From: Macrostomum lignano
Taxonomy: Eukaryota
Reading direction: 5' to 3'
Assembly: GCA_002269645.1 (NCBI GenBank)
Contig: NIVC01002944.1
Coordinates: 65,266 to 129,265, forward strand
DNA length: 64,000 nucleotides
Shown: positions 25,301-31,300 of the stretch, in pieces
Numbering within the stretch: the first letter of the stretch is position 1
How the letters are laid out: every line of letters begins with the position of its first letter
Translations under genes and position numbers: made by a program
The notes under the pieces: generated by a model
Told to the model about the DNA's origin: nothing
Seen by the model: only the letters and a program-made list of their open reading frames with translations
Databases searched by the model: none

Positions 25301-28300
25301 TGGCGGGGGTCTAGATCTGTGGTGGAGGTGGTCTACGAGTAGATGTGTGGCGGAGGGGATCTAGATCTGTGGCGGGGGGTCTAGATCTGTGGCGGGGGGT
25401 CTAGATCTGTGGCGGGGGGTCTAGATCTGTGGCGGGGGTCTAGATCTGTGGCGGGGGGTCTAGATCTGTGGCGGGGGGTCTAGATCTGTGGCGGGGGTCT
25501 AGATCTGTGGCGGGGGGTCTAGATCTGTGGCGGAGGGGGCTAGATCTGTGGCGGGGGGTCTAGATCTGTGGCGGGGGGTCTAGATCTGTGGCGGGGGGTC
25601 TAGATCTGTGGCGGGGGGTCTAGATCTGTGGCGGGGGGTCTAGATCTGTGGCGGGGGGTCTAGATCTGTGGCGGAGGGGGCTAATTCGTGCTGGGGAGGC
25701 AAAAGTGCAGGCACTAGCAATCTCAGAAAGAGCATCTCGCTCACGTCTTATCGTTGAGTTTGTGGCAGATGTTGAGGTCGTGAAAGAGGTGCAGGAAGGT
25801 GTCGGTGTGGCTCTCCGGCATCTCCAGGTCGGCGGTGAGGAATCGTTTCAGCTGGCTGATCTGCAGCTCGCCGCGCTGCGACAGGGTGGCCTGGCGGGGC
25901 GGGCAGCTTGGCAATGTACATTCGAATAAAAATATTTACAGATTCCAAGCTCAGCCACAGTACCGGTAATTTGGGGCTTGCGCATGAGATATTGCCCAGT
26001 GGGTGCCGCAGCCCCCTTGCGAACACCATTATCATTATTGCCAGGCAGACGGCTGACTCACCGTGCTCTTGAACAGAACCACCGACTGCAGCACGAAGAG
26101 GAACCACTCCGCGTCTGGGCAGAACAGGGAGGGATTGAAGTCGCCGCGGATGTGCAGCAGCAGGCCCAGCTCGTGCATGAAGTCGATGGCTGCGGATATT
26201 TTTTGGGATTTGGATTATCAAAGTGATGCTTTAAAAGCCTGATTAAAATCGCAGAGAAAATACGAACTCTAAAGAATTCTATAATTCAAGTACCAAATGC
26301 CAAGATTAACTCCCAAATCCCGAGATTAACTCTTAAATCCCGAGATTAACTCTTAAATCCCGAGATTAACTCTTAAATCCCGAGATTAACTCTTAAATCC
26401 CGAGATTAACTCATAAATCCTAAATTTAACTCCCAAATCCCGAGATTAACTCCCAAATCTCAAGATTAACTCCCAAATCCCAAGATTAACTCCCAAATCT
26501 CAAGATTAACTCATAAATCCTAAATTTAACTCCCAAATCCCGAGATTAACTCCCAAATCTCAAGATTAACTCATAAATCCTAAATTTAACTCCCAAATCC
26601 CGAGATTAACTCCCAAATCTCAAGATTAACTCATAAATCCTAAATTTAACTCCCAAATCCCGAGATTAACTCCCAAATCTCAAGATTAACTCATAAATCC
26701 TAAATTTAACTCCCAAATCCCGAGATTAACTCCCAAATCCCAAGATTAACTCCCAAGTCTCAAGATTAACTCATAAATCCTAAATTTAACTCCCAAATCC
26801 CGAGATTAACTTCAAATCCGCACCTTTCTCAAACGCCTGGCTTGGAACCTCGCAGTTTTTGGCGGCCTCTTTCAGCAGCTCCAGCATTTCGTCCTCAGTG
26901 ATGAGCGGCACGTATCTGGTGGGAGAAAAGCCAGGTAGGGATAACTCGATTTTCAAGGGCATGACAAAAGCAGCAAGAGACTTTCAGACTCCAACAAGTC
27001 TCAGTTCCGGCTCTAGAGCAGGTTGCTCGTAGGCATGATGATCTCCTCCTGAAGTCCTCACCTCCCCCTCTAGATCAGGCAGACACCCAACTGGAAGTCC
27101 CCATCAGGCAGACACCCCACTGGAAGTCTCCATCAGGCAGACACCCCACCAGAAGTCCCCATCATGCAGACACCCCACCAGAAGTCCCCATCAGGCAGAC
27201 ACCCCACCAGAAGTCCCCATCAGGCAGACACTCAACCGGAAGTCCCCATCAGGCAGACACCCCACCGGAAGTCCCCATCAGGCAGACACCCCACCGGAAG
27301 TCCCCATCAGGCAGACACCCCACCGGAAGTCCCCATCATGCAGACACCCCACCAGAAGTCTCCATCAGGCAGACACCCCACCAGAAGTCTCCATCATGCA
27401 GACACCCCACCAGAAGTCTCCATCAGGCAGACACCCCACCAGAAGTCCCCATCAGGCAGACACCCCACCGGAAGTCCCCATCATGCAGACACCCAACCGG
27501 AAGTCCCATCAGGCAGACACCCCACCGGAAGTCCCCATCAGGCAGACACCCCACCAGAAGTCCCCATCATGCAGACACCCCACCGGAAGTCCCCATCATG
27601 CAGACACCCCACCGGAAGTCCCCATCAGGCAGACACTCCACCAGAAGTCCCCATCATGCAGACACCCCACCGGAAGTCTCCATTTCCGGTGCCAGGCCCC
27701 CCCGTCACCTCTGGGCGCTGTGGCAGCCCTGGATGGCCTCGAAGCGCTGCACCACGAGCTCCATGGCGTTGGTGAAGAACATCGGCAGCTGACGGCCGAT
27801 CACGCGGCCTCGCTTGACATCGTCCGGGCAGGGCAGCTCCAGCGACCACTTCAGCACCGTCCAGCGCAGCCTGGCGATCGCCTGGTCGTCCGGCTTCTCG
27901 GCCAGGGTGAGGAACTCCACAACGGTGGGGTAGCCGGGCGTCCGGTCCAGCTCGGACCGCCACTTGGACACGAGCTCGTCCACCGAGAACTCCTCGCCGG
28001 GCGGCAGGTTCTGCCCGATGGCGATCACGATGCTCTTAGGCGCGCGGGCCTGGAGTAAGCGGATTGCCGGTGCGCCTGTCACTCGCCTGGCACTCCGATC
28101 CCAAGACGTGTCACTCTATGCAAATCCGTTACTCTGCAAATCTGTCACTCTGCAAATCTGTCACTCTATACAAATCTGTCACTCTGCAAATCTGTCACTC
28201 TATACAAATCTGTCACTCTATGCAAATCTGTCACTTTGCAAATCTGTCACTATGCAAGTCTGTCACTATGCAAATCTGTCACTCTATGCAAATCTGTCAC

Positions 28301-31300
28301 TATGCAAGTCTGTCACTATGCAAATCTGTCACTATGCAAATCTGTCACTCTGCAAATCTGTCACTCTATGCAAATTTGTCAATCTATGCAAATCTGTCAA
28401 TCTATGCAAATCTGTCACTCTGCAATCTGTCACTCTATGCAAATCTGTCACTCTGCAAATCTGTCAATCTATGCAAATCTGTCACTCTGCAAATCTGTCA
28501 ATCTATGCAAATCTGTCACTCTGCAAATCTGTTAATCTATGCAAATCTGTCACTCTGCAAATCTGTCAATCTATGCAAATCTGTCAATCTGCAAATCTGT
28601 CACTCTATGCAAATCTGTCGCTCTGCAAATCTGTCACTCTATGCAAATCTGTCACTCTATGCAAATTTGTCACTCTGCAAATCTGTCACTCTATGCAAAT
28701 CTGTCACTCTGCAAATCTGTCACTTTGCAAATCTGTCACTCTGCAAATCTGTCACTTTGCAAATCTGTCACTCTATGCAAATCTGTCACTCTATGCAAAT
28801 CTGTCACTATGCAAGTCTGTCACTCTGCAAATCTGTCAATCTATGCAAATCTGTCAATCTGCAAATCTGTCACTCTATGCAAATCTGTCGCTCTGCAAAT
28901 CTGTCACTCTATGCAAATCTGTCACTCTATGCAAATTTGTCACTCTGCAAATCTGTCACTCTATGCAAATCTGTCACTCTGCAAATCTGTCAATCTATGC
29001 AAATCTGTCATTCTGCAAATCTGTCACTTTGCAAATCTGTCACTCTATGCAAATCTGTCACTCTGCAAATCTGTCAATCTATGCAAATCTGTCATTCTGC
29101 AAATCTGTCACTTTGCAAATCTGTCACTCTATGCAAATTTGTCACTCTGCAAATCTGTCACTCTATGCAAATCTGTCACTCTGCAAATCTGTCACTCTAT
29201 GCAAATTTGTCACTCTGCAAATCTGTCACTCTATGCAAATCTGTCACTCTGCAAATCTGTCACTTTGCAAATCTGTCACTCTATGCAAATCTGTCACTCT
29301 GCAAATCTGTCACTTTGCAAATCTGTCACTCTGCAAATCTGTCACTCTATGCAAATCTGTCAATCTATGCAAATCTGTCAATCTATGCAAATCTGTCACT
29401 CTGCAAATCTGTCACTCTATGCAAATCTGTCACTCTGCAAATCTGTCACTTTGCAAATCTGTCACTCTATATCCATGTCACTCTAAAATATTAGGCAATA
29501 ATCACGTTAGCAAGCCAATTAACTACAAACCTGAATAGTCAATAGGCTCTGCTTAATCTTTTCGAAGGCCCCCTGGCCGTCAAGGCAGTCCCACAGCAGC
29601 AGGTACAGAGTCTGCTTGGTGAGCACAATCTCGTGCGTGCTGTCTATGGCCGGACTCGCGCTGCTGCCCGAGTGCAGCACCCAGGCGTGCAGGTGCAAGC
29701 TCAGTGGGAAGTCCTCCTGTGCAGTGGGTGAGTGCGGTTTTGGCTGTGAGCTCACACAGCAGTGACATGGACTTCTGGATTAACTAACTGGAGTGAAGAC
29801 TGGCTGTGAGCACACACAGCACTGGATTAGCTAACAGGTAGTTTACCCCGGGAATTCCCCGCCACTCACCGGCGCCAGCTTGGCGGCGCGCAGATCCCGG
29901 GAGCCACGCCGAGGTGCCACCCGCCGGTGGGCGTCCACCAGATCGCGACGCGTCATCTGCAGGTGAAAAATCCGGGCCGGCGGCTGCAGCAGCGTGTCGC
30001 GGAGGTTTCGCCGGAGCGGCGCCTCCGCATTCCGGATGTAGTTCTGCTGCACCACCCGGTCCAGGGACCAGTGGCTGCGCTCGCCCCCGCCTGCCGAGTC
30101 CCCGGCCGCTGAATCGGCCAGGTAGAGGGAGCGAGCCGAGTCCGCGCAGCTGTGGCTGAAGCCGAGCCGGGCCATCAGCCACTCTCGGTCCTTGGGCTGC
30201 GGGCATCGGCAGGTGTTGAAGCAATTAATCTATTTATCTCAATATATCCCACCTACTAAAATCCCATCTTCCAAAAATCCCATCCTCTAAAAATCCCATC
30301 CTCTAAAAATCCCATCGTCCAAAAATCTCATCCAAAAATCCCATCCTCTAAAAATCCCATCTTCTAAAAATCCCAACCTCTAAAAACCCAATCCTCTAAA
30401 AATCCCATCCTCTAGAAAAACCATCCTCCAAAAATCCCAACCGAAAATTCCATCCTCTAAAAATCCCATCTTCTAAAAAACCCATTCTCCAAAAATCCCA
30501 TCTTCTAAAAATCCCATCCTCTAAAAATCCCATCTAAAAAACCCATCCTCCAAAAATCCCATCCGAAAATCCCATCCTCTAAAAATCCCATCGTCCAAAA
30601 ATCTCATCCAAAAATCCCATCCTCTAAAAATCCCATCTTCTAAAAATCCAATCCTTTAAAAATCCAATCCTCTAAAAACCCCTCCTCCAAAAATTCCATC
30701 CTAGAAAGATCTCTAAGAACTTTCAAATAACATAACGCATATTAAAGATTTTGCACACAAGGCATCTCTTGCTTACTCCGTTGCCGGCCACAACCAGCTT
30801 CAGGTGATAATAGGGGCTGGTTCTGTACAGCTGCAGGCGAAGATGGTTCAGCAGTGGGATGGTGCTGACGAAGCCTGCAGAGAGTGGACAGTCAGAAGCT
30901 CAAAGAGTTGCACTTTTGTTATGGATAGACATACAGACAGATAGACAGATATACAGAGAGACAGACAGGCAGACAGGCAGACAGGCAGACAGGCAGGCAG
31001 GCAGACAGGCAGACAGACAGACAGACAGACAGGCAGGCAGGCAGACAGACAGACAGACAGACAGGCAGGCAGACAGACAGACAGACAGACAGACAGACGC
31101 GCAAACAGCCGCAGCCGCTCACTCTTCTGCACGAACTGGCGCAGCGGCTCCTGCAGCTGGCCGGGGTCGCAGACCAGCCGCATCAGCTGGCGGCACTGGG
31201 CCAGCTCCACCGGGATCTGCCGGATGCGGCTGTTGCTGCGGGGAGAGGGATGAGTGAGTAAGTGAATGAGTGAGTAGGTGAGTGAGTCAGTGAGTGAGTG

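Follow-up and report, generated by a model that had tools for sequence, protein, structure and literature searches.

A LRRK1-like gene of Macrostomum lignano with a putative pseudo-GTPase ROC domain and a complete set of kinase motifs

We describe a LRRK-family gene of the flatworm Macrostomum lignano, located on the minus strand of a 64,000-nucleotide stretch of DNA (assembly GCA_002269645.1, contig NIVC01002944.1, positions 65,266 to 129,265 of the forward strand; hereafter the window, in whose coordinates all positions are given). The predicted protein has the domain order ANK-LRR-ROC-COR-kinase, and the residues by which a ROC domain binds nucleotide are replaced in it. With moderate confidence, we consider it probable that this ROC domain is a pseudo-GTPase retained in a structural role beside COR, and that it stands before a working kinase under non-nucleotide control, in a real multi-exon gene of the LRRK1 clade. 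The LRRK1 family is related to LRRK2, the human Parkinson's-disease kinase, and how the ROC GTPase controls the LRRK kinase is a long-standing question in Parkinson's-disease biology. An earlier note on the same DNA had proposed an active LRRK1-like kinase, uncoupled from GTPase control, with ROC as a pure scaffold; activity, uncoupling and the scaffold role are plausible inferences from motif conservation.

Replacement of the nucleotide-binding motifs

The G1, G3 and G4 motifs of a G domain are required for the binding of nucleotide and Mg2+. A MAFFT alignment was made of the flatworm protein, eight canonical ROC-COR segments of LRRK proteins and two degenerate segments of sponge type. In it, the flatworm P-loop (G1) reads GNGPKDRE in place of the GxxxxGK[S/T] of the family, with Asp for Gly, Arg for Lys and Glu for Ser/Thr. 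Beta1, the P-loop and alpha1 align without any gap, so that the motif has been replaced at unchanged length. At G3, Trp153 is retained and DxxG has become VLHS; at G4, THLD has become QNLP (IGQNLP against VGTHLD). The G2 switch-I region is occupied by a low-confidence insertion over which the alignment is unreliable. This insertion, of about 75 residues, encoded by exon 10 and located between alpha1 and beta2 in place of switch I, is lineage-specific and largely disordered. Judged by this alignment, every residue that binds phosphate, Mg2+ or guanine is replaced, which bears out the loss of G1, G3 and G4 claimed in the earlier note.

These replacements are rare in the family. Among 79 aligned ROC-COR sequences, the P-loop Lys is found in 77, and the flatworm protein alone has Arg at this position. 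The P-loop Gly and the G4 Asp are each present in 75 of the 79 sequences, and the G3 Asp and G3 Gly in 71 each. GK[S/T] as a whole is absent from only three of these homologues, the flatworm protein and two sponge-type proteins. On these counts, the loss of the motifs is not due to chance.

The peptides on which the earlier note relied are present on the minus strand (30777-30806, 30158-30196, 29666-29716, 29588-29641 and 28002-28049), and again on the plus strand in a second, partial copy of the gene. Our exon map reproduces the numbering of exons 9 to 12, and the junctions across ROC are canonical and the same in both copies: GGA/GTAAGC...CCCGCAG/CCC for exons 9/10, CCG/GTGAGT...GCACAG/GAG for exons 10/11 and CAG/GTTTGT...CTCCAG/GCC for exons 11/12, with a slash at each border. 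The annotated M. lignano model P0003 uses the same exon 9/10 junction. G3 and G4 both lie inside exons, and their reading is therefore independent of splicing.

The earlier note had singled out a hidden exon supplying GKT or DxxG as a finding that would overturn its reading. We searched all frames of 27700-31300 and of the second copy and found no GK[ST], NKxD or GxxxxGK[ST]. Over the 64 kb of the window, a Walker-A pattern has three matches, all outside the mapped exons; two of these are interrupted by stops, and the third (63005-63028) is far outside the gene. A frameshift was also considered as the origin of the odd P-loop and rejected: the other frames of exon 10 begin PRTESG, followed by a stop, and QGPRVADG, neither with GKT. 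The second of these frames is also the start of annotated model P0002.

It could still be argued that the gene model or the assembly is at fault, and that the true mRNA uses another exon or frame with canonical motifs. The assembly shows an N gap, two palindromes and indels in homopolymers, and frameshifts are visible in other annotated models of the gene. We find this explanation hardly credible, given that the P-loop is gap-free across the exon 9/10 junction, that G3 and G4 need no splicing to be read, that the frames of the gene hold no Walker-A motif, the only three matches in the window being outside exons, and that the same reading is obtained from both copies and from annotated models P0003, P0004 and P0006.

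Identity and predicted fold of the ROC domain

The C-terminal half of ROC (alpha2 to alpha5) together with COR matched LRRK2 structures with E=1.6e-27 in phmmer searches and LRRK1 with E=1.3e-19, and isolated LRRK2 ROC crystal chains were matched at about 1e-10. Pfam COR-B was found at 32.6 bits (cut-off 27). When HMMER was run against the whole PDB and against 1.8 billion proteins, all of the matches to proteins from outside Macrostomum started at about residue 165 (IDSTHE, exon 11), just past G3. That these matches begin only after G3, together with the silence of the Pfam Roc and Ras models, shows that the N-terminal half of ROC has diverged beyond detection by sequence. In the C-terminal half, the Arg of QARAP (exon 12), at the ROC-COR interface, is retained; its counterpart in the alignment is the Arg of IKARASS in LRRK2, which we take to be R1441.

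An AlphaFold2 (AF2) model, a check proposed in the earlier note, predicted a Ras-like fold joined to COR. The model has a predicted local distance difference test score (pLDDT) of 70.5 and a predicted template modelling score (pTM) of 0.70, and shows six strands and five helices in the full Ras-type order (beta1-alpha1...beta6-alpha5). Block pLDDT values are 81-89 for beta1-alpha1 (89 for the block with the strand at residues 23-30), 80-90 for alpha2-beta5 and below 50 at residues 49-99, a disordered stretch that occupies the place of switch I. In a Foldseek comparison with the PDB, human LRRK1 (8e05) ranked highest, with E=1.3e-26 and a TM-score of 0.62; LRRK2 and RocCOR of the bacterial CtRoco came next, and the matches extended over about 630 columns. 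Judging from the sequence match of the C-terminal half and COR, the positional alignment of beta1, P-loop and alpha1, and the predicted topology, homology to ROC-COR is secure.

The earlier note had also described the flanking ROC core as preserved. This holds for the half that faces COR, which is kept; the N-terminal half retains only 5 of 11 family-invariant positions and is beyond the reach of Pfam Roc. In the proposed comparison with Pfam Roc and with homologues, the Pfam model gave no match, and the P-loop aligned gap-free with LRRK homologues.

Placement in the LRRK1 clade

In a neighbour-joining tree of 488 ROC-COR columns, the flatworm protein stood beside molluscan LRRK1-like proteins, inside the group that includes vertebrate LRRK1. 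The LRRK1 group was the nearest clade in 184 of 200 bootstraps (92%), a value obtained with a distance method and for a long branch. The nearest proteins from outside Macrostomum, at about 30% identity, are named LRRK1 or LRRK1-like by NCBI and come from a brachiopod, a hemichordate, a nemertean, an annelid, echinoderms, molluscs and amphioxus. LRRK1 has a COR-B loop of more than 27 residues with an inhibitory Phe and PKC sites, and a long COR-B loop and an insert between kinase beta3 and alphaC have been discussed for LRRK1 and LRRK3 (PMC10643122). In length, the COR-B loop of the flatworm protein (about 65-70 residues, between RLVARLH and CWRRG) agrees with this, and the protein has the beta3-alphaC insert common to the LRRK1 group. 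In plain sequence comparison, human LRRK2 outscores human LRRK1. The tree, the shared COR-B loop and the shared kinase insert together support the name LRRK1-like given in the earlier note, as does the Foldseek ranking, and the placement of the gene in the LRRK1 clade is supported. The supplements of the LRRK1 phylogeny paper contain no flatworm names. Among other flatworms, schistosomes possess a single LRRK (PMC4669435).

Uneven constraint and the kinase domain

Pfam Pkinase matched the kinase domain with E=4.2e-26. Motif alignment found its catalytic motifs complete (YRD, DYG, the alphaC Glu and DVYSFG), and the claim that all of them are preserved stood. Retention of family-invariant positions is uneven along the protein: 45/53 in the kinase, 16/19 in COR-B, 10/18 in COR-A, 11/17 in the C-terminal half of ROC and 5/11 in its N-terminal half. 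The invariant positions of the kinase and COR-B are thus retained at about 85%, and the two regions together differ from the N-terminal half of ROC with p=0.008 (Fisher). The losses in ROC include Gly to Asp, Lys to Arg, Asp to Val and Gly to Ser in the N-terminal half, and Thr to Gln and Asp to Pro at G4. This uneven retention, with the catalytic set complete and the QARAP Arg kept, points to a gene under constraint rather than in decay. Among the sampled homologues, only the flatworm protein combines a fully degenerate ROC with intact kinase motifs.

The gene and its partial inverted copy

The composite protein was built from annotated models P0003 and P0001 and from our own junctions, and mapped back on the minus strand. 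The resulting model has 1725 residues and runs from 37145 down to 14575 with GT-AG borders. More than 20 exons have open frames and canonical splice sites in the exon map, a homopolymer indel in the ANK exon apart (Table 1). UniRef proteins of M. lignano are 96-100% identical to the exons, exon by exon. The per-exon tblastn identity of P0003 to the window is mostly 90-100%; two LRR segments and the spliced ROC exons fall below this range. The coding exons are GC-rich, with a GC content at third codon positions (GC3) of 0.75-0.96, and exon 10, with a GC3 of 0.85-0.91, is in line with them. The last mapped exon ends in CACITE followed by a GTAAGT donor, and the gene must therefore continue downstream of 14575. 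Two non-repetitive minus-strand open reading frames are found 3' of the kinase exons, at 1961-2635 (225 residues) and 774-1478 (235 residues). Their joint size is about that expected of the WD40 domain, for which they are candidates; neither showed similarity to LRRK C-termini or a Pfam match.

The second copy is one arm of an inverted duplication, 26686-37764 on the minus strand against 51780-40392 on the plus strand, which comprises the 5' two-thirds of the LRRK gene and surrounds an N gap of 362 bases (40030-40391). Model P0003 (931 residues) ends at the same first COR exon as this copy (...QAFEK). An alignment of the arms over 7059 columns shows 44 substitutions (0.6%) and 142 columns with gaps. 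Nearly all of these differences fall in minisatellite introns, and repeats are the source of most of them; in 2319 exon bases there are 0 substitutions. Minisatellites mutate quickly, and the identity of the exons is therefore only weak evidence for selection. The statement in the earlier note that the motif loss is seen identically in both copies is correct as to the sequence. It does not provide independent support: a truncated, near-identical arm beside an assembly gap, with no kinase, is not independent evidence, and we rejected the second copy as a confirmation.

On a rival view, the gene is a decaying duplicate, already a pseudogene or about to become one, that dates from the recent whole-genome duplication in M. 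lignano, and the decay of ROC would reflect relaxed selection. The species is neopolyploid and has redundant copies in large number (PMC10733133, PMC5730564). In both copies of the present gene an indel shifts the frame of the ANK exon, the copy on the right is cut short, the protein is highly diverged overall from other LRRK1s, and Pfam Roc fails. We nevertheless regard decay as quite unlikely. The changes in ROC, which involve all motifs and the 75-residue insertion, are far older than copies less than 1% apart; more than 20 exons are open with canonical splice sites; about 85% of the kinase and COR-B invariants are kept; and the arms differ by 0 substitutions in exons against 44 in introns. 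The two indels fall within G4/C5 homopolymers, each copy having its own site, and P0003 has neither of them; this is typical of long-read errors, and both are probably errors of the long-read consensus. Other homopolymer runs in the window may then be unreliable as well.

A proposed structural ROC domain before a constrained kinase

The reading that we favor, a pseudo-GTPase ROC retained as a partner of COR, would account for the loss of the nucleotide-binding residues alongside the retention of a predicted Ras-like fold and of the COR-facing half of the domain (alpha2-beta4-alpha3-beta5, with the ARAP Arg). At the level of sequence, the case for a pseudo-GTPase is strong. We infer that ROC no longer binds or hydrolyses GTP, as in a nucleotide-free pseudo-GTPase of the 'class I' type, and that it would survive to give COR-B a fixed structural partner. 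With its catalytic residues and its contacts to COR-B constrained, the kinase probably still works under inputs other than the ROC nucleotide cycle. Speculatively, Asp35 and Glu37 could offset the charges of Lys34 and Arg36 and take up the space left at the phosphate site. We would advance more tentatively, and with some doubt, the proposal of a naturally GTP-independent LRRK1-type kinase, in which ROC would be permanently nucleotide-free, acidic residues of the P-loop would occupy the phosphate site and lock ROC-COR in one conformation, and the kinase would be both active and under selection.

Several observations weigh against the favored reading. Neither Pfam Roc (PF08477) nor Ras matched the domain up to E=10, under conditions in which Lingula LRRK1 scored 65.8 bits and a sponge degenerate ROC 30.5 bits with Pfam Roc. 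Pfam COR-A reached 30.2 bits (E=4.8e-7), below its cut-off of 35.3; both the COR-A and the COR-B matches arose after the exon junctions had been refined, neither being present in the first rough concatenation of exons, and Roc was found in neither version. Canonical LRRKs supplied the alignment that guided the AF2 fold. WD40 was not located downstream of 14575 by tblastn with the LRRK1s of Lingula, Ptychodera and Owenia, by phmmer at maximum sensitivity or by Pfam. A word-indexed protein search, run with a single sequence and with an alignment, returned M. lignano models only, and no orthologue from another flatworm. The ANK exon carries frameshifting one-base homopolymer deletions in GGGG/CCCCC runs, at 34582 in the first copy and at 43789 in the second. 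In sponge-type relatives, ROC and kinase are degenerate together, which argues for coupling of the two domains. Finally, the kinase activity of human LRRK1 and LRRK2 is lowered upon exclusion of nucleotide (PMC4104024), and an intact set of motifs is for this reason no guarantee of activity.

The last two of these points also favor another explanation, which we consider unlikely: the protein would be silent in both enzymatic functions, or its kinase strictly partner-dependent, making it a scaffold or regulatory subunit that pairs through COR-B with a GTP-competent LRRK paralogue. The sponge degenerate-ROC LRRKs also lack the HRD Asp, and one of them the DFG motif. COR-B, the dimerisation element in Roco proteins (PMC6337361), is the best-kept part of the flatworm protein, with 16/19 invariant positions. 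Conversely, every catalytic residue of the kinase is kept, which is hard to explain without kinase function, and no second ROCO protein of M. lignano turned up, though the searches were ill-suited to finding one.

It also seems conceivable, if very improbable, that ROC binds nucleotide in a non-canonical manner, through Lys34 and Arg36 or with an altered base specificity, and is still a switch. GNGPKDRE still contains two basic residues, and the predicted model retains the fold. However, other residues stand in place of the P-loop Gly, Lys and Ser/Thr, of the Walker-B Asp and of the Asp that specifies guanine; switch I is replaced as well, and the phosphate loop has gained two acidic residues. 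Single changes at these positions of a G domain abolish nucleotide binding.

Comparison with other ROCO proteins

With the LRRK1 clade (human; Lingula, Owenia, Tubulanus, Pecten, Haliotis), the flatworm protein has in common the order ANK-LRR-ROC-COR-kinase, the COR-B loop, the kinase insert, and YRD and DYG. It differs from this clade by a ROC domain without G1, G3 and G4, with about 75 inserted residues for switch I and unseen by Pfam Roc, by an overall identity of only about 25-30%, and by a WD40 domain that was not located. Of the solved structures, human LRRK2 is matched most strongly by sequence (99.8 bits), from ROC alpha2 through COR, and both proteins have DYG. In contrast to human LRRK2, no ARM domain was seen in the flatworm protein; LRRK2 lacks the long COR-B loop and the kinase insert, and the flatworm protein falls outside the LRRK2 clade in the tree. 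LRRK2 kinase activity needs bound guanine nucleotide (PMC4104024).

The two sponge-type degenerate-ROC proteins were found by screening homologues for missing P-loops; thus, a degenerate ROC is not unique to the flatworm. One is a 'LRRK1-like' protein of the homoscleromorph sponge Corticium candelabrum (XP_062502621; P0160/P0086), with a P-loop GYQSKVKQ, WNFTG at G3 and YYSG at G4, and hence with G1, G3 and G4 lost. The other, an ENA protein of sponge type (P0151), has the P-loop GPPSKSKA. Both keep the P-loop Lys, whereas the flatworm protein has Arg. Their kinases are degenerate, with HRN...DFR in one and FRG in the other, so that the HRD Asp is lost in both and DFG in one; the flatworm kinase motifs, in contrast, are intact. 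From their sequences the sponge-type proteins appear to be doubly dead ROCO proteins, apparently uncharacterised. A canonical LRRK2-like gene (P0028/P0162) is found on the same Corticium contig as XP_062502621. Flatworm and sponge-type proteins lie in different parts of the tree, and we therefore take their losses as independent; common descent of the two was rejected on the same ground. What appears to be new in the flatworm protein is the combination of a fully degenerate ROC with an intact kinase, the degenerate ROC itself being already seen in the sponge-type proteins. The earlier note had mentioned neither these proteins nor the insertion of about 75 residues nor the failure of Pfam Roc.

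PseudoGTPases have been described as a class with a G-domain fold without nucleotide binding (PMC12490416). Like pseudoGTPases in general, the flatworm ROC keeps a (predicted) fold, has lost its motifs and resides within a multidomain signalling protein. Unlike other pseudoGTPases, it is directly upstream of a kinase that ROC normally regulates. We found no description of a ROC or ROCO pseudoGTPase in the searchable literature. A precedent for independence of ROC-bound GTP is offered by the human ROCO kinase DAPK1: disruption of nucleotide binding by ROC does not lower its activity, while exclusion of nucleotide lowers that of LRRK1 and LRRK2 (PMC4104024). DAPK1 differs in that its kinase is N-terminal and its ROC P-loop intact; it binds GTP and belongs to another subfamily.

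The gene may offer a natural test of whether LRRK kinases need the GTP switch. Artificial nucleotide-free mutants of LRRK1 and LRRK2 are hard to interpret because their kinase activity is reduced, whereas a natural LRRK1-clade protein without the nucleotide-binding motifs, and with kinase and COR-B constrained, presents a defined set of compensating substitutions to transplant. If the more tentative proposal of a naturally GTP-independent kinase is true, the flatworm keeps its kinase working without nucleotide, which the K-to-A and T-to-N mutants of human LRRK1/2 cannot, and the way in which the state of ROC reaches the kinase would be revealed by the changes that compensate, namely the insertion and those at the ROC-COR interface. 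The sponge-type proteins, in which ROC and kinase have decayed together, give a comparative handle on this coupling. Should the flatworm kinase prove inactive, it would represent a second, independent joint loss, in support of obligatory coupling. RNA interference is workable in M. lignano. Transgenesis has also been established in this species (PMC5730564).

Feature coordinates and neighbouring sequences

Table 1. Exons, introns and second-copy segments of the LRRK1-like gene in the 64,000-nucleotide window
Feature	Position	Strand	Basis
Exons 1-8: ankyrin and leucine-rich repeats, N-terminal	31121..37145	minus	exon map; Pfam LRR families and the name ANK_REP_REGION on P0003
Exon 9: end of the LRR-ROC linker, ROC beta1, first half of the P-loop	30777..30874	minus	acceptor CTGCAG/GC, donor GGA/GTAAGC
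Intron 9: almost wholly a 16-nt minisatellite, ATCCCATCCTCTAAAA, about 30 copies	30197..30776	minus	tandem-repeat scan
Exon 10: second half of the P-loop (PKDRE), alpha1 (WLMARLG), insertion of about 75 residues, beta2	29870..30196	minus	
Exon 11: beta3 with degenerate G3, alpha2, beta4 (LYLLLWD), start of alpha3	29531..29716	minus	
Intron 11: 16/34-nt minisatellite, TGTCACTCTGCAAATC, about 80 copies	28050..29530	minus	tandem-repeat scan
Exon 12: end of alpha3 (QARAP), beta5 with degenerate G4, alpha4-beta6-alpha5, start of COR-A	27708..28049	minus	
COR-A and COR-B exons: 26825-26914, 26062-26190, 25744-25890, 23972-24634	23972..26914	minus	exon map, LRRK2 alignment
Kinase exons: about 23321-23638, 21740-22195, 21032-21256, 14575-14967	14575..23638	minus	exon map, Pfam Pkinase
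Second copy: ANK-LRR-ROC and the first COR exon only, no kinase	40392..51780	plus	
ROC exons of the second copy	47348-47445, 47981-48307, 48461-48646, 50433-50774	plus	

Minisatellite and microsatellite tracts dominate the introns of the gene (27074-27683, 28109-29468, 30246-30702, 30927-31098 and 31251-31640), with a 29-nt unit repeated 21 times, 16/34-nt units 80 times, a 16-nt unit 30 times, (AGAC)n and (TGAG)n. An array of units of about 40 nt near 2700-4260 yields long spurious open reading frames. A second palindrome, 52907-57600 / 62113-57438, has 98.7% identity over 4.7 kb and essentially no spacer. Two fold-backs in a stretch of 64 kb point either to a genuine tendency towards inverted duplication or to artefacts of long-read assembly (missed adapters).

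A non-repetitive, protein-like open reading frame of 254 residues lies on the plus strand at 9351-10112, 3' of the last mapped LRRK exon and on the opposite strand to it, possibly inside a long LRRK intron; its sole Pfam match was Lactamase_B_2 (E=0.25, below cut-off). The unique spacer between the arms of the first duplication holds an open reading frame of 231 residues on the minus strand (39052-39744), with weak similarity to short-chain dehydrogenases/reductases (SDRs; adh_short, E about 1e-3, below the Pfam cut-off); it may belong to a nearby SDR gene as one of its exons.

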